Assembly: GCF_036321535.1 (NCBI RefSeq)
Contig: NC_087439.1
Span: 15,190,001 to 15,254,000, forward strand
Direction: 5' to 3'
Source of the DNA: Camelus dromedarius
Lineage: Eukaryota
DNA length: 64,000 bases
Part shown: piece by piece, positions 3,870 to 63,408 of the stretch
How the letters are laid out: each line of letters begins with the position of its first letter
Numbering within the stretch: the first letter of the stretch is position 1
Translations under genes and position numbers: made by a program
Notes under the pieces: generated by a model
The model's database searches: none
Told to the model about the DNA's origin: nothing
What the model saw: only the letters and a program-made list of their open reading frames with translations

Positions 3870-4009
3870 NNNNNNNNNNNNNNNNNNNNNNNNNNNNNNN
3901 NNNNNNNNNNNNNNNNNNNNNNNNNNNNNNNNNNNNNNNNNNNNNNNNNNNNNNNNNNNNNNNNNNNNNNNNNNNNNNNNNNNNNNNNNNNNNNNNNNNN
4001 NNNNNNNNN
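3870..4009. other. Assembly gap (140 N)
   Basis: Run of N. Confidence 1.
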
Positions 4010-17081: not shown

Positions 17082-18667
17082 TATAATTGCCAGCTCAATT
17101 CCCTTATCCCCACCATTGGTTCTCAGAAGGAAAGATTAACTCCTCTAGCATTTGAGAATACAGGGTCTGGCTGGATCTGGAGGGGGAATGAAAGGAAAGA
17201 TAATCTTACCATGAGCTACAAAATAAAGAATAGAAAAGAAAGGAGAGGGATGAGAGAAGGGAAGATGGATGGGTCTAGTCACGGAAGCTAGGGGTGAATG
17301 AGAGGCTCCAGGCCACGTTGTGTGTAAGAGAAATGAGGACTGGATCTGAGAAGTGCTGCTGGGGGTTAATGCTCTTCAGGAGACAGAAGTAAAGCATGGG
17401 GGTGGGACAGGGTGGGGAGGGGGGAGGTGCCAAGATGGCAGAGTAGACAGACTCACAGCTCACCCTCTCCCACAAATACACCAAGAATCACACGTACAAA
17501 CCCACTAAATCACGCAGAACACCTACTGAACTCTGGCATAGTGTCTCTTGCTTCGAAATCCAGGAGGATACTCACAAAATCTGGTAAGAAAAAAGGAAAG
17601 AAAATCAGTGCAGGACTGGTCCTGCAGGGAGGGAGCGGCATAGGAAGCAGGCACCCTCGCACTGGGACGCCCCCTCTCCATCTGGGAGGTCAGCGGGGAC
17701 AAAAGCGGAGCTTCCAAGGCTCAGAGGAGAAAGTGGCAGCCACCTGGCAGACAGAAGTAAGAGAAACTGGCACGGAGGGTCCCTGTAATCCCCAACCCTA
17801 GATGTGAGCTGGCAGGGGCAAGCTGGGACTGGCTGCTGGAGATCTTTGAGGAGCCTGGGGAGACGGCTGGGGCCACTGCACAGAGGCAGCCTTAGGGGAC
17901 TGGGAGGCGGTATGAGCTTTAGACGGGGGGGGGGGGGGGGGTGGAACAGAAAAGCCTGGGATCCCCAAAAAAGCACTACTGCTGGTGTGCGGGGGATTAG
18001 GGGGAGGCACAATGCAGCCTCACCATAGCTTCTGTCTCTACCTGGCTCCATTGTTGGTGTGTTCTCAAGAGAAGAGAGGTGGGGCCCCGTCAAAGCCATC
18101 ACAGCTACGCAGAGGCGGAGCTGAAAGCTGAATCCATACCCAGGGGCCCTGCAACTTCACAGGCAGGACTGAGATTTGTTTATAGCCCCAGTCAGAAAGG
18201 GTAGATTTGCTCCCCTGGTGCTATTGTTAACCTGCGCCTCTGGGACAAACAGGCAGTGAGCAGAGTTCTGGCAAACACAGGGTATTTACAAAAGGCTGGC
18301 ATACCTTACCATATGCGGAGGTGGGGCTGGGGTCTGCGCTGACCTTCTGGCATACCTCGGATTCAGATGTGTGACTGCATGCTCACTATGGTGAGTCCTA
18401 GTGCCTGACATTGGTGGACATGCACTGGTGGTTCCTGGGGCCCAAAACCTGGGGGACACCAGAGCAGGTGGCTAACATTCCCGCAGATAAGGGCAAGACA
18501 AAGGCAGCATCAACAAAGAGTACTTTGTAAGCCCGCATAACAAGTGACAGACAACACCACAGAGGGCACTTCCCAGTGGACATCTCCTGTGGAGGTACAC
18601 TCAGTGACTCTTCTGCCTACTACTCACCACAGCTCAGAACGAGTCTGGAGGGAACTCAAATTTGAAA

Positions 18668-18857
18668 NNNNNNNNNNNNNNNNNNNNNNNNNNNNNNNNN
18701 NNNNNNNNNNNNNNNNNNNNNNNNNNNNNNNNNNNNNNNNNNNNNNNNNNNNNNNNNNNNNNNNNNNNNNNNNNNNNNNNNNNNNNNNNNNNNNNNNNNN
18801 NNNNNNNNNNNNNNNNNNNNNNNNNNNNNNNNNNNNNNNNNNNNNNNNNNNNNNNNN
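18668..18857. other. Assembly gap (190 N) immediately 5' of a young L1 end
   Basis: Run of N; may hide more L1 sequence. Confidence 1.
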
Positions 18858-19277: not shown

Positions 19278-21252
19278 AGTAAATCATGGAGTCCCTTGTA
19301 TATTATGGTATGGCTATTAAATTGTACATCAGTAAATGTGACACCATTCCAAAACTAAATAACAATTTGAGTGCACCACAAAGTTGAGACCAAAGGATAC
19401 AGTTTCAACAGGTCTATATCTGTTAAGAAACAGGGAGCAGAACGCATCCTCATATCCAAACTTGTCTCACATACTGGGGTGGGAGACAACTTTCCAGGAA
19501 CATGGCAGGCTCATGGCAAAGAACATCAACCTGCAAGGGACAGAAGGGACCTTCTGCAAATCAGGAACGCATAAGTCCAACCTCTAACGCAAGGAAGGAG
19601 AAAATAGCAGAAGATAAAAAGCCACAAAGCACTGCTCCAAACACATAGACAATGTCTCCAGAGACTTCCTGAACTAGCACGGAGATTTGAGGAAGTATAT
19701 ATTTGCAACAATTTTTGTGACTACAGATGCAGAGAAAGGTGTTGCTTCTGTTCTCATGATCCTAATTTACCTCCTGGTTGGAGAAAATATAGATTATACG
19801 CTCTATCCCCATTGAAAAGTTTAGAAAAATAGAAACCAGAAATCGGTAATATATTTAGATGACATATACTAACTTCAAGGTCATGGAGCAAGACAGATGT
19901 GTCCACTAGGCAAGCAGAGATTTTAGGCTGGATTCTGAAATGGGGAGGGATCCTGAGATGTGGACTTAGGAGAGGACAGCAGGAGCCACGCGGGCCAGGA
20001 GGGAGCACATGGAGAAAAGTGCGCAGAGGTCTGAAGCCTCATAACACCCAGCTTCTCAGTTGCTTAGCAACTCCTCTCATAGAGATTAAGCAGTGAGTCT
20101 TTCAGAACTCTGCAGTGAGCTCTTTGTTGTAGGTAACAAAATTGTATCTGAGTCACCAAAGAGTTACTTGGGCTTTCAGAGGTGACAAACTCATTACCAG
20201 AGGCAGTCAGTTACCATGGTTTATGAGTTCGACTGTGAGCTGCCCTGAGGGATTCCAGAGAAAAAAGAGACAGCCCCAGTCAAACCCTGATGAGTTCACT
20301 ACCTAGGCAACACATACTCATACGTGTAGTTATTGAGAAGAAATACACCCACCTCCAAGTGTATTTTTAATTAATTTATGTGTTCTGAAAATGCATTTGA
20401 TTAGTTTATTCATTTGTTTACAAGCACACATGTTCTCATGTCCATTTTAACATCAAGAAATTCAACTTCTTTGCCCTGCAAAGAAACACCTAAGGCAAAG
20501 GAAGACTAGTCACCCAGCATCCTGGAATTGGGGGTGTAACAAAATATTGAGTGACCCAATCAGGCTATTATCCCCCAGAACACTTCTATACAAAGATGTT
20601 CAGTACAGAAATAGTAATTAATTTCGGTACAGAGTATGCAGCATTTGGAAGGAAACAAGCTGACATGTCAACCCCGGCATCCCAAGACAGGAGGTGAAGT
20701 TAACCTGAAGAAGTAGACCCTCTCCAACCAAGCTTGAGGGATAAGGAAGGCAATCGAGCCCCACGAATAAAAATTATTTGTACATCGTGAAAAGTCTAGA
20801 CTGGGTTCAAAGAGACAGGGTTTGTGCAGTGAGTTGTCAGAACATAGCATGTAGCTTGTACTGTAAGAGTCCCTAGTCCCATGTCTTTGCCCTGGGAATG
20901 ATGACAGTGCACATAGTATAAAATGAAGGAGTACCACTGATCACAGCTGGCACCTCTGGAGCAAGGCCATCCTTTCTCCATGGCTGTTCTGAGGAGCGGA
21001 CACAGGATAATGACCCTGCTGAGGCCCCATCTATATACATGTGAGTGATAGGAAATGGGGGCTGCCAGAACACTAGTGTTCCCCCACTTGGAGGTGGGAA
21101 ACAGATAGACATGCCACTTGGAACAGTGCTAGCCCAACTCATCCCAGAGTTCCAGAAGAAAATTAAGGGAGGGATGGCATCCCAAACTGGAAACCTCCTC
21201 ATGCACTATTCTGACCTGGCCAAGCTAGCTCTAATTTAATTTAAAGAAATAA

Positions 21253-22694
21253 GGAGTGACATCACCAATATGGTGGAGTGGGACACCCCAGCTTCCATCC
21301 CCACAAAGCAAAACAATTAGACAGCTGTCTATGAATGAAAACAGTTCTGGGAGCCCTCAGGAGTCTGCCTAAGATGCCTCAGTGACACAGTGGAACAAAA
21401 ACCTGAAATAAAAGCACAAAAGGGTAGAAAAAACAGTTTCATTATACCTGCATCATCCCATCCCCTAGGCCAGCACTGCTCAGCACCGAGAGGGAACACC
21501 ATGGCCCAAGAGAACTTCCCTCACTCAGAAAACAAGAGTGGGGTGAGCAACCAGCTCCCCCAGCCTCTTGGGCCACTGCACAAGGGACCTGTTTGGTTTC
21601 ACCCCATGTAGAGGCCAGCAAAGCTGAGACATCTGGAGACAGCTAGGAATAAGGAAGAAGGGTGGGTTCTACCAGTATCACCAGTATCACCTGTGTCAGG
21701 GGAGCTACCAAGTTTCCAGTGGCCAGCAATGTCAAGGACCCCAGCAGCTTTCACCACCTAGGAAACCAACAGCCAGCACAGCTGTCAAGGACTCCCTACA
21801 GCTTCTTCTGCTGAGGCCATGCAGGTTTTTGCACTTGCAGACTCCAGCTGCCTGGGTCCCTCCCCACATTCACCCACCACCACCATCATCACCACCACCT
21901 GAACCACACTAGCCAGAGCCTATGAAGTGCCCTAGTCCCAGAATCCATCAGGGCCAATCTGCCTGTAGCCAGCCCTGGCCTCTGTGGCTGTGTGCATGCC
22001 CAATGCCAGGTCTCCAGTGCCAACCTCTACCCCATGCATATGGAATAAGACACAATAAATGAAAAGATATTCCATGTTCATGAATCAGAAGAGTTAATAT
22101 TGTTAAAATGTCCAGTCTACCCAAAGTGATCTATAGAGTCAGTGAAATCCCTACCAAAATTCCAGTGGCATTTTTCATAGGTATATTTTTTTAAATCTCA
22201 ACATTTGTATGGAACCACCAAAAAACTCAAATAGTTAAAGCAATCTTGAGCAAGAAGAACAAAGCTGAAAGCATCACAGAGCCAGGTTTCAGGCTATGTT
22301 ACAAAGCTATAGTAATCAAAACAGTATAGTATTGGCATAAAAAACAGACAGATCAATGGAACAGAATAGAGAGCCCAGTGGAATACTATTCAGTGCTTTA
22401 AAAGAAGGAAATCTTACCATTTGTGACAACATAGATATTCCTGAAGAACATTATGTTAAGTAAAATAAGCCAAACACAGTCAAATATCACATGATCTCAC
22501 CTATATATGAAATCTAAAAGAGTCCAACTAATGGTAACAGAGAGTAGAATGGCGGTTACCAGAGGCTGAATCGGGGCAGTCAGGGGTGGGGGGCACATGG
22601 TGGTGGGAGAGAAAAGGAGCTACTGATCAAAAGGTACAAGGTTACAAGATGAATAAGTTCTGGACACATAATGTACTACATGGTGAATATGTTA
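21253..22694 (+). mobile_element. Old L1 (L1MA/MB-like) with two large internal deletions: 5'UTR, short ORF2 piece, 3' end
   Basis: 5' start 'ggagtgacatcaccaatatggtggagtg'. ORF2 segment about 22042-22377 ('aagatattccatgttcatg...tcaatggaacagaatagagagccca'). 3' segment from about 22378 ('tggaatactattcag...gatgaataagttctgg') runs into a gap. Confidence 0.8.
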
Positions 22695-22826
22695 NNNNNN
22701 NNNNNNNNNNNNNNNNNNNNNNNNNNNNNNNNNNNNNNNNNNNNNNNNNNNNNNNNNNNNNNNNNNNNNNNNNNNNNNNNNNNNNNNNNNNNNNNNNNNN
22801 NNNNNNNNNNNNNNNNNNNNNNNNNG
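22695..22826. other. Assembly gap (132 N)
   Basis: Run of N. Confidence 1.
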
Positions 22827-23139
22827 GATATATGCCACCTTTTACTTGGATGTTAGAGATTGCATATGATGACAACACCCTTAGTAAGGAGAGTTTATTG
22901 TATAATTGGCAGCTGGACTAACATGTGTAGGCCAGTATCATCTGACAACTTGTAGATTCATTGGTTAACCCATACATGATGTTAGTCCAGCTTCCAATTG
23001 TACATCCAGCAGATGTTCATTAAATATAGGGGAATGCGTGAGCACAATGAGATAACACAGCCAAAAATGAAGAATATGCTAAATCTGGGCCAATGCTAGG
23101 TAAGAGAAAACCTTGGTCTGCAAGATATCCTGTTATGAT

Positions 23140-23553
23140 AGGCTATTACTCAGCCATAAAAAAGAATGAAATAATGCCATCTGCAGCAACATGGATGGAC
23201 CAAGAGATTACCATACTAAGTGAAGTCAGACAAAGAAAGACAAATATCATGGTATCACTTACATGTGGAATCTAAAAAAATGATATAAAGGAATTTATTT
23301 GCAAAACGGAAATAGATTCACAGATATAGAACACAAATTTATGGTTACCAAAGGGGGAAGGGGGGAGGAATAAATAAGGAGTTTGAGATTAAGAGACACA
23401 CACCACTGTATGTAAAATAGATAAAGGACCTACTGTAGAGCACAGAAAACTATATTCAATTTCTTATAAAAACTTATAATGGAAAAGAATCTGAATCACT
23501 TTGCTGTACACCTGAAACTAACACAATCATGCTTCAATAAAAATAATAAAAAG
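23140..23553 (+). mobile_element. L1 3' end with ORF2 C-terminal remnant
   Basis: ORF track 23093-23275 reads YYSAIKKNEIMPSAATWMDQEITILSEV..LTCGI*, the L1 ORF2p C-terminus, followed by the cetartiodactyl-type 3'UTR. Confidence 0.93.
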
Positions 23554-24070
23554 AATTCCTGTAATGAAGAAAATGGAGAATAGAATTAACAATGCTTGTA
23601 CATTAATGTCCTGGGGGATTTTCAGTTATTTTTGTTATTGTTTATTTCATAAATAAATCTTTTTCACCATATCCACTTTGTCTAGAAATGTTTACTGAGA
23701 ATAATAATGTATTATAGTAAAAGGACAAGAATTGATTTTTGTCTAACTCACTGAAATGTGTCACATTCTTTTCCCTTAATTCTTACAAGAAAATTAATTT
23801 TGTTTTAATTGTTTTTTAATTATCTGCTTCCTTTCAAGAAACTGAGCATGATGTAAATTAGCAGACAGGTGCACTATGGAAACTATCAACATATAGACCA
23901 TCCCCAACTTATAAATGGAGTGAGTTCTCAAAGTTTCTTAATAAGTTAGATGTTGAGAAATCAGAGTGTATTTTTTTCCCATGAAGATTTGTTACACAGA
24001 GTGGTTAGTTTTCTAGATCCAATAAAAATCTTTCTACCCTGTTAACAATCATGAAATTGTTTTCCTAGAC

Positions 24071-24600
24071 CAGTTACTCTCAAAGTGTGGTCCACAGATC
24101 CTAGGAAACCACTGAGACACATTCAAGGAGCCCTTGGATCAGAAATATTTTCACAATCACACTGAGAAGTTATTTACCTTTTCACTGTGTCAACATTTAT
24201 GTTGATGGTCCCAGAGCAACAGTGGATAAAACCACGGATGCCTTAGCTGAAACCAAGGAGAGGGCGCTGAACTAGCAGTTTTCATCTCCTTCACCACCAC
24301 TCACACAGAGTAAAACAAAAATGCCAATTTCACTTAAGAATGTCCATGAGGCAGTAACATTGTTCATTTTATTAAGTCACAACTCTGAGGGACATCTTTT
24401 TAATATTCTATATAACAAAATGGGAACTATACATAAAACACTTCTGCTGCTTACCAAGTACAACAGTTATTTCCAGAGCAAGGGGAAAACTGTGTGATTG
24501 TTCAAGATGCAAGTCAACTAGCCACTTTGTTCACAGAATCCCACTGTTTCTGAAAAGACCAACTGGGAAACTGGTTATTCAGACTGGGTATAGATATTTT
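24071..24600 (+). mobile_element. hAT-Charlie1-like DNA transposon, 5' part
   Basis: TIR-like 'cagttactctcaaagtgtggtcc', then 'ttcactgtgtcaacattt...gccaatttcacttaagaatgtcc...acacttctgctgc...ggttattcagactgggtat'. Confidence 0.85.
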
Positions 24601-26204
24601 AGTTTCCTATTTATTCTTCGTAAGTTTACTTTCAGCTTCTTTCATCCCTCTTGAGACAACCTGAAAAGTCTATTAAAAAAAAAAAAAACCTACGACAAAT
24701 GATCTTAATCAAGAATATCTAATTATTGGACAAGAGGCTTCTCCACTGAAATACCATACTGAGGAACTGAGAACCGTGGTATCTGAGCACGTCAAGTTTG
24801 AAGCAGCTGCTAGAATTGGTCAAACAAGGGAGAGAGAGTTCACCACCTTTGTCAGTGCCCCTGGCATGGGAGAAATCCCTTCTCTTCCCCACCCTGGCAA
24901 GCAGGGGAAGGAACCTCTGCTTAACTTTGGGAGAAGCCATCTGCTATGGCTAAGATAGTTCTAGACTACTAACCTACCCCCATCTCCCACCCAGCACAGG
25001 ATCTGATAAGACCTAAGGATTATCCAAACCCAGAGCACCTGGGCGCCTGGAAGGCGGGGGTTGAGAGGGTGAGGAGTTGCGGGGAGACAAAGACATAAAC
25101 TTGGCCAGCAAAGCTCTCAGAATTGTGGGGCCAGCATGTTTGTTCAGCATCTGTTTCATTGTATATGCGCTGAAGAAGCAGTGACTCTCAAACATGAGGC
25201 AAACTGAAGGAGGAGTCTAGCCAGGGAAGTAACTTTATACAGGCAAAAACAAAGATTCTGATCCTGGCCAGTGGAAGCAGCCACTAGGATTCAAATAGAA
25301 TCCAGAAGACGACAATCAGTCAAGCATGCACAATTATTTGTTAAATTACAGGGCTTCTCCAAGACAGCAGGGGCCCAGCAGTGAACAGACACAGACCCTG
25401 CCCTCATGGACTCAGAATATAAAAAAGACAAATATAAAAAGTATAAGTACGAGTACAGTAAATACAGGGAAATAGGGGAGAGTGTGGTAGCATACAAAGG
25501 TTTTAGCCTGGTTTGTGGGATTAAAGAAGACTCTTCTGAGGAAGTGATATTTAAACTAAGACAAAGGTCAAATAGACATTAACTAACCATGGAGCACTAA
25601 CAACCTGATCATTGCAGACACCTGTCCCAGACACCAGCCTGAAACACAGGCTTTAAAGTGGGGCTTCATTAAAAGCAAGAAGTGCATCATCCTACCTGAA
25701 CCTCTAGGCTCTGGTCAGAGACAAACGCCATGTAGGAGATATGAGGGAGTCATATCAGAGAGGCAAGTCCAGAGGCTAACAGGAAGCCAGTCCCAGAAAG
25801 GTCTGAATGCATATCAGGGGTTCCACAGGGATTGGTACATGGGGAAGTGGAGTAGGGGTGCCTCTGTGAGGTTTAAAGGTACCAAAAACAAGAATGGTCT
25901 CCCAAAAAGGCAAGAAGTAGTCAGAATCTACTCAGTAGAGAATTACGTGTAGAAAAGAATGTACCTCATGAGAAGTTGTAACGATGGTCTTGTTCTTATT
26001 GTTTTTAATCCCAGTAACCAAAATTGGCTACACACACACACACACTCACAGAAAGTATCTTAATAAAAAATTAACTTCTAACCTACTATTTTTTGATAAA
26101 ATGGTAAAAAAAAAGGCATAAATTAAAAATGTAGACTTGAACACAGTTAAAATTAAAATTATGCTACTTCATTTTCTTCTTCTCATATTTTATGTTTAGA
26201 AAAA

Positions 26205-26450
26205 ATGTATATCCTGGAGATCTAATGCACAGCATAGTGAGTAGAGACAAAAAATACTGTATTGTAATCATCAAATCTGCTAAGAGACTAGATCTTAATT
26301 ATTCCCACTGCAAAAAAGAAATGACAATTATGTGACATGGTAGAGGGGCTAATACAATGGCAATCATATTATAATATGTAAGTGTATCAAATCAACATGT
26401 TGTATACCTTAATATACACAATGCTATAGGTCACATATATTTCAAATAAA
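26205..26450 (+). mobile_element. Old L1 3'UTR (L1MA8/9-like)
   Basis: 'cctggagatctaatgcacagcatagtga...gctaagagactagatcttaa...gtgtatcaaatcaacatgttgtataccttaa'. Confidence 0.85.
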
Positions 26451-26516
26451 TGAATGAATGAATGAGTTTGGTCTAAAGAAAGGGTGGTGGCAAGGGAGAA
26501 GAGAGCTGTTCCCAAG

Positions 26517-26895
26517 TGTAGGATATATCACATATGCCCCTGAAGATCTAGCCTCCATCCTTTGCTGACTGTTCATTCATTGCCCTGAAGGCTGACTTTC
26601 AATCGATGACTCAGTGTCCTCTCTTGCCTTCCAGCCTCCTGTTGGGAGGCACTGGCAGGAGGTTGGAGGGGCTCTGAGTCTTAGCATTTGTAGGACAGTT
26701 ATTGTCCTGGTAGCTGCTCCCACCCCCTCCCTCCCATCCCTTCAGGGCTGTGTCAGCTCCCCACTGCGCTAGCCCAGTGTGACTTCACAACCCCTTGCTA
26801 GCACCTCTTAAAGCTGCTTGCACTTTTACAAAACATGTTTTCCTTAAACGCTCCTCAGTGCCCTCACTGGAGTATACCAGACCCTGACTGGGACA
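26517..26895 (+). mobile_element. ERVL LTR (LTR33/LTR16-like)
   Basis: 'gggaggcactggcaggagg...cccttcagggct...cagctccccactgcgctagccc...ccctgactgggaca'; TG...CA ends. Confidence 0.65.
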
Positions 26896-27759
26896 CCAGA
26901 AGACTTTACGCTAAACGTCACAAGATTCTTCACAGCTAGGGATGCGGCACTGAGGTCAAAGAAAGCCAAGAGAAGAGCAAAGACATGACAGTAAAAGCAG
27001 TTGCCTTCCCACCTCCTGGAACTGGAGGGATGCCCAGGGAGCCAAGTCTAAGCATCTAGGGCTAAAGGAGAAGATCCGATTCTTCACATAAGAAGAATGG
27101 AGGGACATGGCCAGCATAACTAAATGAACAATAAAGCTACCACCACTAAGAAAGTACTACACACATGCACTGTGCTTATCATGCTGCTTGCATCATCCCA
27201 CATGGCTTCATAAAAGCCCATTTTCCAGACAAGTAAGTAGACTTAGGCAGGCTGCTTTACTTGGTCTTGGTGGAAGGAGCTGGGTGTACTGGCAAGTCTG
27301 TCTGCCTCGAGAGACTTAACCACACACTCTCCAGTTATCATCACACCTGTGGTTGAGACGCTAAGAAGCTTTGTCTAACTTCCCAGTGATGAAAAGGAAC
27401 AGGACACCCTATAAGCACTGTGCCGGCCACAAGAACCTGCCGCTGAGTTTTAATATCAGCCTGCTTGGATGACTGCTTCAGCGTTTGGACAGAGACCTTG
27501 TCATTTTGTTTTCTTACCCTTTTTTTGTTTTAATCTCTTCTTTTTTCCAGTAACTCCCTTGTTTCCTAAACCACCACCACAGAGACAAAACAGGACAATG
27601 AAACCTTGTTCGAGTGGAAATAAAGAGGAACTAGGATTTCTGCACAGAGGCCAAGATTTCTAGAAACCCGGAGAAACTCAAGAACTCCACCTCAGCGATG
27701 GCAGCCAGAGAGGAATCCTCTGAACTCTCCTCTCTGAAAATGAGGAAACCTAAACGCAG

Positions 27760-29224
27760 AACCCACAGGAGTGAGAGTTCTGAGCCCCGCGTCAGGCTCC
27801 CCGGCCTGGGGTCCGGCACGGGGAGAGGAGCCCCCAGAGCCTTTGGCTTCATTGCAGGAGCCCCACAGGACTGGGGAAGCAGCGACTTCACTCTTAAAAG
27901 GCGCACAGAAATCCCCCCCAACGCCCGGACCCAGGGCAACAGCCGTAATTCGACGGGAGCCTGGGCCGGACCTACCTGCTGGGCTCGGAGCGTCTCCTGA
28001 GGAGGCAGCGGCGGCGGCGGCGGCTCGGGCGGGTCCGCGGAGACACGGGCAGCAGTCATACTTGGGGGCGTTCAGCCCCGTGAGCACGGCTGTTGGTCAC
28101 TGATAACGAGGCTCATTAGCGCCAACACGGGGCAGCGCCTAACAGCCTGCGGGCGCCCGTGCTGGGACGCCTCAGGCCAAACAACTAACGGGGCAGCGAC
28201 ACAGCCTATCAGCGGACAGGCTGGGTAAAGACGAAAGCGCCCACAGCTGCCTCTGAACGTGCCCCTGGACACGCCCCTGGACACGCAGCCAGACACAGCC
28301 CAGCCTATCAGAGGACCAGGACCCAGCTCCTCCCACCAGTGGGCGGGGCCTGCTTTTCCCGCCAAAAAGCCTGCACAAGCCAGTGGATCAGGACCCAGCC
28401 TCACGCACCAGGGGGCAGACACCAGAAGCAGGAAAACTAAAATCCCACAACAGAGGGTTCCCAGCCCTGCCCACTAACAGGCGTACGCAACCTGCAGGAC
28501 ATCTTGGATCCCACACTTAACTGTGTTACGAACTGGCCTCCCCCAACCAACGATCTGAAACGAGCTCAGGGATTCCTGCGCCTGCAGCCAGACTCCAGGA
28601 ACCAGCTCTTGCCTGCTAGTAGAGAGGGACTAACCCCAGGATCTGGCTTAACTCCCAGTGGGGGGGTGGGCAGCAACCCCAGAGTCTTCCGGACTCTGAC
28701 TCCGCCCACCAGTGAGCCGGCACTAGCCCCAGGGCCTCCTAGGGTTCTGCAGCCAGCCACCTTGTGACCAGGCCCCGCTAAACAGCAGCCAGCACCATCT
28801 GCAAGGCAGGGTCTGGCAACCAAGCCCACCTGGCCACCCACGTAGTCAGCTCATCACAGCAGAAGGACCCGCTCAGCCCTCTTAGGGGGACACCCAGAGC
28901 ATATAGCTTGGATGACGGGAGAACAGTGCACCGCTGGGGTGCATAGAACGCCTCTTACAGAGGGCCACCTCGGAGAAACGTAACGAACCAACCACATACA
29001 GGAAAATGCAAAGAACAAGTTAGACAAAATGAGATGGCAGAGGAATACATTCCAGACGAACAAGATAAAACCCCAGAAGAAGAACTAGATGACATGGAGA
29101 TTGGCAATCTACCCAAGAAAGATGAGTAATGATTGTAAAGATGATCAAAGAACTTGGGGGGAGAATGGATGCACAGAGCGTGAAGTCAGAAGTTTTTAAC
29201 AAAGAAAATATAAAGAACAACAAA
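27760..29224 (+). mobile_element. 3'-truncated L1: 5'UTR plus decayed start of ORF1
   Basis: 5'UTR motifs 'cccacaggagtgagagttctgagcccc', 'gcctgggccggacctacctgctgg', 'gctgggacgcctcaggccaaacaac', 'caccagggggcagacaccagaagc'. ORF1 ATG at 29029 (MRWQRNTFQT then frameshifted QDKTPEEEL). Homology stops near 29224. Confidence 0.85.
27781..28420. promoter_or_regulatory. CpG island inside the L1 5'UTR (candidate bidirectional promoter)
   Basis: Hand count of about 44 CpG in 27781-28320 at high GC. Includes a (CGG)5 tract near 28009-28023, GC box GGGCGGGG (28341-28348), MYB-type TAACGG (28186-28191) and a CTCF-like motif (28405-28418). Confidence 0.65.
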
Positions 29225-29293
29225 GTGTGAGACCTTTCTGAGTCCACCGTCCCATGTAACTGCACAGGTCACCGGCCCACGAAGCTGGCCCTG

Positions 29294-29340
29294 TTTCCTG
29301 CAAAGGATCTTTCCTGCAAAGGATCTTTCCTGACAAAGGA
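29294..29340. repeat. 16-bp tandem repeat (tttcctgcaaaggatc), about 3 copies
   Basis: Two perfect units and a third with a 1-nt insertion. Confidence 0.95.
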
Positions 29341-30222
29341 AATCAATTTCTGTTGATCAAATAAACATGCAACAACAACAACAACAACAAAAATCAGCAG
29401 GTAAGACTGTAGAGAAAGCATGAATGGCACAAGCCAAAAATCATATGGAACAATAATGCTACCATATTGTGTGTATGAGAAGCAACAGCCCATGTGCCGA
29501 TCCAAAAGGTTATGACAACCAGCCTCAAATCTAAAGTTCTCTGTCACAGTGAGGACCTCCTGAAATCACTTCCCAGGGCCTTTCCTGGATACAGTTCTTT
29601 CCACTCATTAATCTCAGGGCCAGCACAGCTGTGGTTTCCAGGAAACAGTGGAGACCCTGATGCTGTCACAACTTCAGAAAACAGCCATTTAAATGGACCT
29701 CTGCTGATAAGTCAATTAACAAAAGAAAACAATGATAATCAACAAATTCTCCCACTTAAAACTCGCCTCAAGTTCGCCTAAATGTTGATAAATTGCTATT
29801 AATTTTGCACAGTAAAAGGCCAAGTTATCATTTGTTTCCATCTGCTCATAAGAAATGAGTTTAATCTCTAAATATTAATGATGTGTGTTCATTTGTAACC
29901 AAGGAGCTTTTTAGCTTTCTAGATATTACCGTCACTAATATAAATTTATCAGAAGTGTGGCAGCAAAGTTAAATCCCAGACCAATAGAAGATTTCACTAA
30001 TTGGAAAATCAAATCTGGCTAAATACTAGGTTTGGGCCAGAGCCCACTAATTTTCCCCAGTGCCGTCCACATAGTGAAGGAAGTTGCTTCAGTCATTATT
30101 TCAATCATGCAGTCAAATTAAATCATTTATTATCAAAGCTTTCTCTCCCTGTAATTGGCACTTATTGTTTTTGTTCCCTTACATTTTTCCAAAAGTGACA
30201 GTACTCCAAATATTTTGGGGGG

Positions 30223-30450
30223 GGCCTCAGCAGTGCACTCTCCTCTCATCATCCAAGCTATATGCTCTGGGGGGGTCCCCCTAAGAGGGCTGCGTGGGTC
30301 CTTCTGTTGTGGTGGGCTGACTATGTGGGTGGCCAGGTGGGCTTGGGCACCAGGCCCTGCCTTGTTGTGTGGATGCTGCTGGCTGAGGTTTAGCAGGGCC
30401 TGGTCACAAGGCTGCTGGTCGCTGAACCCTAGGTGCCCCTGGCCTAATGC
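30223..30450 (-). mobile_element. Inverted copy of the L1 5'UTR segment at 28720-28938
   Basis: Reverse complement shares 'ccttgtgaccaggccc', 'caagcccacctggccacccac', 'cagccctcttaggggga' and 'cagagcatatagcttggatga' with the + copy. Confidence 0.9.
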
Positions 30451-33400
30451 TGAACCTTACTCATTCCAGCAATGGCATCCTACAAAGAAATTTGACTTGT
30501 TTCTGTTGCGTGGATTTCCAAACCTACCTCAATTCCTGCCCTTTCCCACCCCTTTTCCCCAGCTTCTCCATTATTTCTATAAGTTATCCAATATCCTTGC
30601 AGTAAATTACTTTTCTGTTAAAGGTAGACAGAGTATCTGCTGCTTTGCAACTAGAAATACACTTAACAACATGGCTTGTGCTTCCATTGTGATTGAGGAA
30701 TATTTTAGATCCCAAAGGATCAAGCTGATCCCTATGGAGCAACTAAAGACAAGCTCACAAAGTTGAACATCTTATTGGAAGAAGAGTTCAAAACATTTAT
30801 AAATATCATAGAAGGACTGACAACGCAACAGACCAGTGTGTTCAAATCAATATAGTATATTTTACGGTTATGGGTGTATTCAAATACATATATATATATG
30901 TACATATAATGATATATATGTATGTTTATAAGGATAAATATGTATACTAAGGAATACCCAGGGAAATCAGATTTTGAGGCAATTACCAGGACAGATGTGA
31001 GATTAAGGGGTGAAAAGGACCTGGTTTAACAAGATGAAAGGAATGATCTACCCAAATTAAATAATCTTGACAATTGCCAAAAACCACTTGCAGTTAGCAT
31101 TACAGAATCAACCAAACTCAAAGAAAACCACTTTTGATGTTGCAGAACTGTTTAATCACCAGTGCCCTAACAATCACTTCGGCTATGTCACACCTGCTTA
31201 GGTTAAGTGATGCCCTATGGTTTTTGTCTTCAAGAGGTATCCTGGGACATGAAGTGTACAACTTATGAAGAAAAACCAATGGGCAACGTTCATGGCAACA
31301 TGTTAGCATTTCTCATCTGTGTAGAAATTTGGGAGTTTGAAAATATCTAAATTGAAAATCTATTTCCCCTACTCTGAGAATATTAATATAATCTCTGTGA
31401 ATGGCAATAACTATTTGAAACCTATCTTTAAAAAACACCCTCAACTTGTATTTTTTTTTAATGTAAAGAAAAATAACTAGGTTTCTTGACTGTGATTTTT
31501 TGCAAGAGAATATAAAAACAGCAACTCTGGGTGGCAATATTTTGTCTACTCTACTCTCCATCCTGATGGACTGAGGCCAAAATTGGCCCTCAGTTTACCT
31601 GCCTATATAGTGATGGCTTCTTTTCTTGGCTACTAGTCCTGCCAAGGGATCCAGTACTCGTTTTGGCCTTAACTGGTTCTGACTTGCCAGCTGCCCTTCC
31701 TTCCCCTGATGCTAGAGTTCCTTCCAGTGGTGCCAAAGCTGAGCCTGAAAAGTTGTGATAGTTAGAACACTGTTACTTGTCTTTCCAAGGCAAGGAGAAT
31801 GGGGTATAGAGGGCTTTACTAATCCATGGGAGACTAGTCCAGATTCAGTGTGTGCTCAGTGCAGTAGCCATTACTGCTTCTAACCAAATATAGCCAGCTC
31901 TCTGCCTCCTGGGCCCAGGGCCTCCCAGCACTTCCTGGCTCCCTTGTGCTGGGGGAGACCACACGCTTTGTGGACTGGAACATCCAGCTGACCTGCAGTG
32001 GACACGGAGCGCTAATGAGGAAGCTCTTTGCAATTAAACACCTCTAGGATTCAGCAGGTTTCTGCAGCATGATGTCACCTAAGTTAACAGATACAAGATA
32101 TTAAAATGTCAATGTTATCACCAAAGCATTTTTAAACAGTGCCTTCAGAAAGCAAAACCAAGCTCCCAACTTGTCCACCAAGTATTCAATTTGGTTATCT
32201 GGCATGATGCAAACAAGCATTCTGGTGATTAACTGAACTTTAAGCAAACTAAACTAACAGAATGTTGATAGATTTCATCAGCTCCCTGCTCAATTCTACA
32301 GGTTCTTTCAGAACATGTACTGTGTGTCTAAAGGTGTGCTGAATTCTAGGAAGAACACAGACTCAATGACACAGTTATATGAGTCTTACTGACAAATTTC
32401 AGCTTGTGGCAAGTAAAATAAGGACTTGGAAACTTCCACTGAGTGAGGTCAGCAGCAGATAATTGTTGACTTCAATAAGAAGCAAATGTCCATTCCACCT
32501 GGATGAAAAGATTGTGCAGGCAGAACCATCGTGAGTTTGTGTTTCCCTCTCGCCCCTGTTGGTTCATAAGCACAAGTCATCTGTGTGTCGACCCTGAGCT
32601 TTATCTCTGCTAATTGTTGGATATGAGGTGCTAAGTTCACTAAGGCACTTCGGTTCACAAAGAATTTTTCCAAAACTTCTTCCTATGAGCTTGTTATAAT
32701 GATGTGCAATATAAAATCAAAACTTCTAAAATCTGGTACACATGTGCATACACGCACACAATGAGTTATTAAAGGGATTGCAGATTAAGATCCAAGGTAG
32801 GTGAGATTCGTAAAGAATCAGAGACTGGGGAACATTTGAACTGAGGCTTGAAGAAAGGGTGGGTTTAATGGACATCACCAGGAACACTGTTGGACCACTC
32901 TCCTTAGTTTCTCAATATGCTTATCTATTTAGTTACCAATTGATAAACAAGCTAGGCCCTTCTTTTAAAGTAAAGCAATTCCTTATTCCTGAGAGGGGAA
33001 AATGGTATATAGTAAGTATATGTCATACCGTATTAAGTGACCTTGGACAAGACTCAGAACTTATTTGAACATCAATCTCCTAGTCTGGGAAAAGCAGGAC
33101 AGGGACTAGATGATGGCTGCATTCCTTAACAGCTTGGTAATTCTCTGAGGACTGTATGCTATGATCTTCTAGCCATCAATTTTCTTCAAATTTGCCACAC
33201 ACAAAAAAACACTCCCATTACAGTTGGCATGCTATTCATCGTTCCTTTGGCCAAATGAAGAAAGAGAGAGCAAAAAGCAACCATCACATTTAAACGAAAG
33301 AGTTATCAGTCATTATTGTACATTGATCTGCTTGAGAAGCCATAGGGCAGAGGCATTTATACAGAAGATAAGCTCATTGTGTTGAACAAATTAATGCTGG

Positions 33401-50143: not shown

Positions 50144-52049
50144 TGGCACCAGCTATGTATGAAACACTGTGCTGAGTGCTACAGAAAAAGAAATAAAAAG
50201 ATGTGTAACACATGGTCCATATTCCCCAAAAGACAAGAACCTGATTGAGGAGCTCAGTCTATTCATAACACAAGGTACTTAGCATTCATTTCTGTGTATT
50301 AAGGATTTCAGTAGATCAGAAGAGGCAGTCACTCCTAGAAGGGTTTTGCTGGGATAAGGTGGGATTTATGGTGGTCCCAAGGAAGACCAACTCAGTGTTG
50401 ATGGTCACCTATCACCTCCACAAAAATGCATATGGAGACAGAGGGAGAAACCAGCCTGCCAGCCTTACAAAGGGACAGAGAAAGCGAGAGTCTTTGAATT
50501 TTATTTTACAGATGGATTCTTCCTCCCCCAACTTCCAGGCAGAGGTTTAATTACTTTAGAAGGGTAATTTGAAAAGTTCTTTAAGACCTTCAGCCATCAG
50601 TTGCCACAAGAAAGATAAGTGCTAGGCTTTCTGTGTCTATTTTGGGGCTGTGGGTAATGCACCATTAGATTAGATCCACGCGGCACTAATTTCACGCTAC
50701 CAATTTCTGTTCTATTAATTCTTCACTTAAATCGGCTAAGCACCTCTTCATTTGCCTCACCACTGTTATAATTTAATATGTACAACCAGAGTTGGAGTTT
50801 AATTGTTTCTTGAGTGAGCTAAAATACAATATTTGTAAAATGCATCCATTTAAGTGAAACCCCAGTAAGATTCTGCCTTTTCCCGCAGCCCCATCGCTGA
50901 CAGCTTTGGTTCCGCTCCTGTGGAGTCTCGTGGATTCACAACACTGATTCCATTAGTAGGGAGAAGGCCACAGCCGCCTGGGGACGGCCCTGCCGATGGC
51001 CCTGCCTCCCCGCCAGCCCTCGCCTCCCTGCTCTCTACCTTGGTTGAAAGACATAAATGCAGCAGGAAAAACACGTTAATGTCTGAACATCAAGAGCTCA
51101 TCCCCTGCCACACTCTAGGGGGAACCTGGCTTTGCTTTCCTGCATCAAGAAGCAAGAGTTTAGCTGGATTTTCACCAAACTGAACAGAAACAGGAAAGAG
51201 AGCGAGAAAGACAAGGAAGCAAAGAAGTCCTTGTGACCCGAAAGGGTCATTTGAGTAGAAGCAGGAAGGGGAGAGACGGATCTTTGCGTGGGGCGTCAAA
51301 GAGGGAAAGGGATCAGGGCTTTGAGAATTCGGTTCTGTGGATTGAAGGCAATCCCTCTTTGGTGTTTTCTCAAGACTGAAGTCAAGATTTACATTGCTTT
51401 TCAAGTACTTTTAGATGCTGAACTGGAATTTCTTTGAACAAGATGCTCAAGAGAGGGAGGGCCTTAGACTGGCTCACAAAGCAGGCTCTTGGTGATTCAT
51501 TTCCCTTCCAAGTCCGAGGAGCAGAGCAGCGCAGTGTCAGGGCCTTACCGTCGCTCGCACAGGCTGGATCGGCCCACAAACTAATCTTACGCTCTTTCAG
51601 AAGGCCAATAGTACGTTTACACAAATCCACAGTCAGGCTGGAACTCAAGAGCCTCCAGAATCATCCCCTTATTCGACATGGCTTCCCGACAGGACCCTTT
51701 CTCTCTTCTCACCTCTTATTCCTAACCGTTCCAAACAAGTTGAAATCTTTACATTTGTCCCAAGATATCCCTTCTGCAAACCTGTCCTGTACATTTATCA
51801 TTCTTCCTTAAGGCCAGCCCCCTCCAAGAGGCCTGCCCCAGTCACTGCATGATCATTTCGCTTTTTCTAAAAGCTGGACTTTTGTAATTATTCACATATT
51901 GGGAAAGTATCATATGTGACAGACAGTAAGGATAACTGCTAGAGAGATGTAAAGATAAGGGTGTTTCTATAGAGTTCCAAAATACTGTCAATCAAATTGA
52001 GCAATTAATTGAATGTGATACTCAGATGAGCTCCTCACTCCTGGTTACT

Positions 52050-62420: not shown

Positions 62421-63408
62421 CTGTTTCACAAATGGTAAAAACAGCCAAACAATGAAATCACTAAGGTGACATTTTACCTTCCCAGTCTCAGAAACGGCTG
62501 GTGAGGAAAATGTCTGTTTTGTGGACTGTGCCCACCCTTGGGGGGAGATCAAAATTCCTCTCTTCTTAAAGCCAACGCGGCCAACCCACCCGATGCATGA
62601 CTTCTCTCCACGAAGCACAAGAAAGTTTCAGAACTGGCTGAGATGTGGGAGCTGAGTTCAGTAATCAAGTAATGAGCCTTAACGAGGAAATCAGGTCAGT
62701 GCCTGCAGGAGCAGAGGAGACCAGAAGCCAGCAGCCGCGGCTCTGGAACACCGGCTCCCACGCAGGCTGCCCAGCTGCCCATCCTTCCCCAAAGGCTCCT
62801 GGAGAAAAGCAATGTTTCTCCTCATCACAGGGCTGTGCCTGGTGCCAGGAGGGAAGCAGAACCTGGCTGGAGTTCACATCAGATGGCTGCACGGTGGGCT
62901 CTGTGGACTGCAGACTGCGGCTTCCGGGGCCAAGTGGCTGTTTCGCTCCAGCTCACTTTCTGCCACGAGAAACTCCGCACCGTTTACAGAGTCTGCTCTG
63001 CTAGTCTCCACCAGCTGTCTCACAAATGCCCGTGCTGGACTCAAGAGTGGCTTCTGGGAGCCCGAGGGAGAACTGGGAGAATTACTTTTGATGGGCCACC
63101 TCTGACAGCTGTGACTTTAAAGCAATGAGACTTTGGGAAACAGCCTGTATTGCTCAGAGTGTCACTGATTCCAAAAGCACACCAAACGCTTCTCATCCTT
63201 CCCAAACCCACTCTACGACAATCCAGGAACAGAAGAGGAAATCAGCTCAGGGCAGCACCAGGAAGAGGGAGGAGTGGACCCCTGACGGGGCGGGAACATT
63301 CACAGCCCTCCAGAAGTGGAAGCAGGATGGGACCACACTTGTCACCGCCCAGGAGGTGCTGGGGGAGGGTCCTCCCTTCAGACCTGTAGCTTTTTCATGG
63401 CGACATGG

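Follow-up and report, generated by a model that had tools for sequence, protein, structure and literature searches.

Introduction

Methylated CpG dinucleotides are rapidly lost by deamination whereas unmethylated ones are not, and the dense cluster of CpGs carried by a dead LINE-1 (L1) copy in a 64-kb stretch of the Camelus dromedarius genome (the whole of the DNA analysed, hereafter the window) raises the question of how it has survived. The features on which an answer may be built are collected in Table 1; the L1 copy that carries the cluster is referred to as the focal copy.

Table 1. Features at and around the focal L1 copy, in coordinates of the window
Feature	Position	Strand	Basis
Antisense ORF, 142 aa, within the island	27634..28059	-	ORF list; starts at 28059
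Probable 5'-terminal part of the L1 5'UTR	27648..27761	+	starts GGCCAAGAT, resembles the start of L009 and L014; moderate confidence
L1 5'UTR	27762..29031	+	blastn/MAFFT to independent L1 copies at other loci
CpG island	27781..28320 (core 27900-28299)	.	CpG count, GC, observed/expected ratio; outlier across the window
(GGC)n microsatellite within the island	28004..28024	+	TRF: period 3, 7 copies
12-bp tandem duplication, unit GCCCCTGGACAC	28261..28286	+	TRF: 2.2 copies, 100% identical
Private deletion of 8 bp at the end of the 5'UTR, just before ORF1	28971..28972	+	alignment
ORF1 N-terminal remnant	29032..29227	+	translations, HMMER, alignment
Sister fragment B of 28709-28939, 225 bp, CpG-depleted	30225..30452	-	83% identity

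CpG content of the window

A direct count gave 44 CpGs in the 540 bp of the island, exactly the number that had been estimated by hand in the original prediction, with GC 0.670 and a CpG observed/expected ratio (o/e) of 0.725. This ratio, whose calculation had been proposed there, rises from 0.73 over the whole island to 0.83 in the core, which holds 38 CpGs, and reaches 1.03 in 100-bp segments. With its 540 bp, GC 0.67 and o/e 0.73 the stretch qualifies as a CpG island under the thresholds of Gardiner-Garden/Frommer (>=200 bp, GC >=0.50, o/e >=0.60) as well as those of Takai-Jones (>=500 bp, GC >=0.55, o/e >=0.65), and the largest region passing the latter, when the scan was allowed to begin no earlier than 27500, is 27500-28379. 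Across the window, 540-bp segments contain 5.4 CpGs on average (sd 4.8), with a maximum of 45 in the segment starting at 27755 and at most 18 in any segment outside the island, and the o/e of the entire 64 kb is 0.23. The island is the sole strong CpG island of the window.

Some weaker local features were also recorded. The second-richest stretch is 62493-63032, with 18 CpGs in 540 bp, and a minor enriched patch at 51501-51700 has 10 CpGs in 200 bp (o/e 0.73). The unique flank upstream of the L1 (27300-27760) has an o/e of ~0.4-0.6 in some 100-bp segments, as against the mean of 0.23 for the window, and may represent a 'shore' of the island. Three runs of N are present, at 3870-4009 (140 bases), 18668-18857 (190 bases) and 22695-22825 (131 bases).

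Sequence identity of the island

On the evidence of alignment, the island is identified as L1 5'UTR rather than as a host promoter or retrocopy, since in other L1 copies the DNA upstream of ORF1 aligns through the island and into the ORF1 start, in agreement with what had been predicted. The comparison copies (L001, L005, L007, L009, L012, L014, L015 and L025) were aligned with blastn and MAFFT and show 64-81% identity overall; positions 27762-28440 align to other copies at 64-75% identity, and 28740-29031 likewise aligns to them upstream of their ORF1. The sense strand of the 5'UTR is A-rich, like the ORF1 part. That the CpG-rich part is not L1 at all, and that an L1 adjoins the promoter of a host gene or a CpG-island fragment inserted as a retrocopy, has a negligible probability in our view: independent L1 copies are homologous to 27762-28440, with the order preserved and ORF1 following directly, and the island ORFs have neither a Pfam nor a protein homologue (Pfam gave no match for these ORFs or for the ORF1 pieces, and Rfam gave none in 20000-29599). 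This origin was rejected, being refuted by the L1-copy alignments over 27762-28440.

On the 3' side, a 34-aa piece (29126-29227) matches N-terminal fragments of ORF1 at 67-79% identity in a library of 1.84 billion representatives (HMMER). A profile built from such fragments found 7436 related proteins, some of them with PF17489, and the ORFs downstream of the matching ORF1 fragments carry PF02994 and PF17490 on contig L009 and PF17490 on L012. The element had been described as dead, with a frameshifted ORF1 ending near 29224, and this description is borne out by 4-bp deletions near 29057 and 29122 and by the end of L1 homology at 29224-29227, ~190 bp into ORF1. A 6-bp in-frame deletion is also present near 29202; it removes two codons of FNKELENIK, occurs in L015, L025, P0002 and P0004 as well, and is probably a recurrent slippage deletion, because the tree does not group its carriers with the focal copy. 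No continuation of ORF1 or ORF2 was found anywhere in the 64-kb window, and no direct repeat that could be a target-site duplication flanks the L1 fragment. ORF2, the 3'UTR, the poly(A) tail and the target-site duplication are thus all absent from the focal copy, and they are taken as lost rather than never present since the copy is a 5'-only remnant. Past the break, the sequence contains a 16-bp tandem repeat of 2.9 copies (29294-29340) and (CAA)7 followed by an A-rich run (29370-29390). The Logan contig L011, reached through the 33-aa ORF at 29129-29227, represents the focal locus itself: it runs collinear with the genome across 29129-30196, and 1016 of the 1017 bases compared (29600-29648 left out) are identical.

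The term 'truncated' in the original prediction holds for the 3' side of the element and does not hold for the 5' side, where homology extends upstream to at least ~27720 and perhaps to 27648. Homology among the other copies continues beyond 27762 in the upstream direction, and for ~40 bp it extends, more weakly, to the focal copy; L009 and L014 extend ~330 bp further to the canonical start GGCCAAGATGG. A local alignment of 27648-27752 with the start of L009 scored 30, as compared with a mean of 21 in shuffled sequences, 7 of 300 of which reached 30. Some 220 bp of L009 and L014 are missing from the focal copy between this 5'-terminal part and 27762, and the copy is probably complete at its 5' end with an internal gap.

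Comparison copies, fragment B and the age of the focal copy

The window contains a further L1 5'UTR at 21253-22035 which, as had been pointed out, is CpG-poor (1 CpG counted). It gives no blastn alignment to the focal copy and passes directly into ORF2-like sequence (~22060); it is therefore a different, older L1 and makes a poor control. Further old L1 5' starts of the canonical CAAGATGG type are present at 17429-17492 (+) and 21253-21300 (+), the former matching the 5' start of L009 at 80% identity. Among the comparison contigs, L001-L003 are very probably from camel, the run behind L011 being numbered in one series with those that gave L002 and L003, and L015 and L025 probably come from ruminant hosts because their flanks carry what we take to be a CHR/Bov-tA-like SINE. 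This type of 5'UTR is found on probable camel contigs and on probable ruminant ones, and all the copies together, with CpG columns masked, give an almost star-like tree; the lineage therefore appears to go back to about the time of the camel-ruminant split or further. Published work on camel transposable elements yielded no data on 5'UTRs or subfamilies.

A closer relative of the focal copy lies ~1.3 kb away within the window. Fragment B and 28709-28939 (+) form an inverted repeat, and the two share 13 derived substitutions and a 20-bp deletion in comparison with four outgroup copies. No further L1 homology was found on either side of fragment B with older copies as probes. An isolated internal piece of 5'UTR is not what L1 integration normally leaves behind, and a local inverted duplicate of the focal copy is for this reason at least as likely as an independent insertion of the same subfamily; the isolation of this minus-strand piece suggests an inverted duplication made by repair and not retrotransposition. 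A 23-mer diagnostic of the subfamily of the focal copy and fragment B had no exact matches in JGI metagenome contigs, GTDB genomes or IMG/VR.

Fragment B bears directly on the age of the focal copy. With CpG columns masked, the terminal branch of the latter measures 0.13-0.15 substitutions per site, a value that falls among those of the decayed copies, and its private indels are as many as theirs. The conclusion that the focal copy is as old as the decayed copies was nevertheless dropped, about half of its 'private' changes being common to fragment B. Since the common ancestor of the two, the focal copy has accumulated 8 non-CpG changes (3.7%) and fragment B 10 (4.7%) over ~215 bp, and at mammalian neutral rates a divergence of 3.7-4.7% corresponds to the order of 10-30 million years. 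With ~4% private divergence, the focal copy is to be regarded as moderately old and not ancient. It is certainly not fresh, to judge from its two frameshifting 4-bp deletions, its 8-bp deletion and the cut at 29227; the corresponding 190 bp of ORF1 are free of frameshifts in six of the eight other copies.

Origin of the island CpGs

The original prediction asked that CpG retention be separated from CpG gain, and the comparison of copies indicates that the CpGs were mostly inherited. Where the focal copy has a CpG, TG or CA is the usual state in other copies, and the two frequently occur together at a single site; it follows from this mixture that an ancestral CpG decayed independently in each copy. 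About 60% of the island CpGs show the TG/CA pattern of ancestral sites, and ~11-17 are specific to the lineage of the focal copy, having arisen by transversion at sites where the other copies all share a different state. On this pattern, most CpGs of the island have been kept from the ancestor, and the newly made ones are the minority. In the part of the alignment that corresponds to 27900-28299, the focal copy combines its 38 CpGs with TG and CA o/e of 1.16 and 1.24, while seven other copies have 1-4 CpGs, a CpG o/e of 0.05-0.20, and TG/CA o/e mostly of 1.4-1.75 (range 1.13-1.75). Over the island as a whole, the o/e of nine other independent copies is 0.04-0.20 and the CpG density of the focal copy is ~10 times theirs, although these nine belong to older subfamilies and constitute a weak control, not one of the same age. 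When ancestral CpG sites were inferred without the focal copy, with per-site majority states used only to polarise differences, 21-31% of them were kept in the focal copy versus 0-11% in other copies.

A minority of island CpGs is thus lineage-specific, and it could be argued that the inserted copy gained GC and CpG through GC-biased gene conversion or some other local process, independently of methylation. The island changes of the focal lineage do run W>S 26:18, as against 57:137 in the pooled others (Fisher p 4e-4), and CpG-creating changes make up 11 of 57 in the focal lineage versus 5 of 238 in the others (p 1e-5). However, both classes of change may have arisen at the level of the subfamily rather than at this locus, and most of the island CpGs are ancestral. 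Biased gene conversion is not at work in the overlap with fragment B, because the post-split changes there are S>W in 5 cases and W>S in 2. The flanks of the L1, whose composition had been named in advance as informative on this point, have a GC content of 0.45-0.47 and no GC or CpG enrichment matching that of the island. Such a process is a very improbable source of the island.

Germline methylation and copy age

If most of the CpGs were inherited, the explanation we favour for their survival is lower germline methylation of the focal copy than is usual for L1 copies, and we judge the chances that this is so to be evenly balanced. The focal copy is the front end of a dead LINE-1, with a 5'UTR running from at least 27720/27762 to 29031 followed by ~190 bp of ORF1. 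In the middle of this 5'UTR, 400-540 bp correspond to the CpG-rich internal promoter of the element itself, still a true CpG island. Germline methylation at this copy would have been below the L1 norm and its CpGs would have been spared, since hypomethylated CpGs escape loss by deamination. Repeat-derived CpG islands with intermediate or low methylation in sperm have been documented (PMC4509998).

The most direct comparison is that with fragment B. Of five securely ancestral CpGs in the overlap, fragment B has lost four, each through a C>T or G>A transition, and the focal copy has lost none by transition and one by transversion. The difference in transition-type losses (0/5 versus 4/5) has a Fisher p of ~0.05 on five sites, and if CpGs are lost at 12-25 times the per-site rate, the focal copy would escape such loss altogether with a probability of 0.11-0.01. 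Direct evidence for slower CpG decay is confined to this contrast, which is suggestive and lies outside the island core. The escape from germline methylation that was originally proposed is thus favoured in part, by this contrast and by the roughly tenfold CpG density, and weakened in part, as the density controls are from older subfamilies and the contrast itself reaches a p of only ~0.05.

Another explanation with a real, if lesser than even, chance of being correct is plain age, according to which the focal copy belongs to a moderately young camel-lineage L1 subfamily, was initially very CpG-dense, has been methylated and silent, and has simply not finished decaying. Its private divergence is only ~3.7% (8/215) once subfamily-level changes are removed, and, with the ~6-fold per-site rate of Alu-style CpG decay, ~60% of CpGs would survive a divergence of 3.7%, so that the observed o/e could have come from an ancestor near 1.0. 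Quite a few of the family-level ancestral CpGs are already missing from the focal copy, which also shows a mild excess of TG/CA, and its CpG retention is similar inside and outside the core, being not clearly higher within it. LINE sequence in called CpG islands is moreover mostly young 5'UTR with no known function (PMC12582260). Against plain age stands fragment B, which has a like private divergence and yet has lost four of the five ancestral CpGs that the focal copy did not lose by transition. A retention of 0.4, as calibrated on older copies, would also demand an ancestral core o/e near 2, and two island ORFs, used as queries against the protein collection, gave no other CpG-rich copy, the single match (an L1 copy found with the 116-aa island ORF) being decayed.

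Possible promoter activity

An unmethylated L1 5'UTR is built to start transcription by RNA polymerase II in both directions, and for this reason the likeliest activity of a hypomethylated focal copy would be promoter-like, as an orphan CpG island giving rise to transcripts in the sense direction, the antisense direction or both. Within the island, a consensus-like splice donor (CAG|GTAGGT, minus strand, read from the sequence) has its GT at 27975-27974, exactly after codon 28 of the antisense ORF. This 142-aa ORF had no homologue in a homologue search, no Pfam family, and no entry in the protein collection by exact look-up; exact ORF-based look-ups likewise found no contig over the island. 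A fuller reading is that the 5'UTR remnant has stayed unmethylated in the camelid germ line for ~15-30 million years and acts as a lineage-specific bidirectional promoter, its antisense arm spliced from the 27975 donor into upstream exons to give an ORF0-like chimeric transcript, with fragment B as a methylated, decayed control of the same age; taken as a whole, this appears rather unlikely.

The sequence motifs that had drawn attention to the island were all found. The CGG tract is the (GGC)n microsatellite of Table 1, at whose position the sequence of other L1 copies is decayed and non-repetitive, and the 12-bp tandem duplication is an insertion private to the focal copy in the multi-copy alignment. 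The GC boxes at 28341 (+) and 28702 (-) are joined by a third GGGCGG at 28027 (+), and TAACGG is present at 28186. The regulatory argument built on the MYB/A-MYB and GC-box motifs is not supported, however, as their numbers are not above chance: GGGCGG was observed 3 times versus 1.8 expected and YAACKG twice versus 2.05 expected in composition-matched sequence. A special case of the hypomethylated L1, namely a germ-cell promoter under A-MYB control, consequently has little to recommend it, and we consider it very unlikely. The single TAACGG agrees with it (1 observed versus 0.18 expected), but with a p of 0.16, and RNA-seq runs labelled 'reproductive system' contain 81-82% of the sampled words of 27000-30000, a match that is uninformative because those runs amount to ~830-850 Mb of contigs and cover ~40% of a 2-Gb genome. 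More generally, RNA runs contain 63-82% of the sampled words of 27000-30000 and are little informative, being 200-850 Mb of contigs (~10-40% of the genome) that were chosen as best matches. DNA runs labelled as three organisms, which are very close relatives only, contain 95-97% of the words of the same region.

Relation to known systems

The nearest counterparts of the focal 5'UTR are the internal promoters of LINE-1 elements such as human L1 and the monomers of mouse L1, with which it shares its position directly 5' of ORF1, its richness in CpG and its A-rich sense strand, together with degenerate internal repeats and a possible canonical 5' start containing a YY1-type core (for the role of YY1 see PMC11602158). 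Unlike these promoters, the focal sequence is unrelated to the 5'UTRs of primates and rodents, and the copy is dead, with nothing past the first 190 bp of ORF1, and is not a recent insertion.

Orphan CpG islands are said, in work by Illingworth from 2010, to act as promoters or enhancers. The focal island resembles them at the sequence level in lying away from any recognised gene start, and it may mark an unannotated one. Counterparts on the antisense side are the chimeric transcripts of the L1 antisense promoter and primate ORF0 (Denli 2015, as described in PMC5203782), the latter being primate-specific. The focal locus is similar in that an antisense ORF starts within the 5'UTR (28059) and has a consensus-like donor 84 nt downstream; it differs in that this ORF has no homologue and is known from sequence alone.

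LINE 5'UTRs routinely qualify as CpG islands, and the LINE sequence in islands is mostly from young subfamilies and possibly functionless (PMC12582260). More than half of human CpG islands are associated with repeats, and most islands consisting of a single repeat are intermediately methylated in sperm (PMC4509998). As an L1 5'UTR that passes the numerical thresholds, the focal island is a further case of this known class of L1 5'UTR CpG islands. The published retrotransposon-derived islands (PMC4509998; PMC12582260) are, in contrast, mostly from young and near-intact subfamilies, while the focal copy is a broken remnant with ~4% private divergence and a CpG-depleted sister fragment. It is this combination of a broken 5'-only remnant with an adjoining, decayed sister fragment that is distinctive here.

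An L1 5'UTR scoring as a CpG island is commonly set aside as no more than a young copy. If the focal island has merely not yet decayed, it is an ordinary copy, and the CpG islands called in camelids include L1 promoters. If it was indeed spared germline methylation, the locus would be a case, with a date attached, in which a transposon promoter became a CpG island of the host type, with a built-in control 1.3 kb away.
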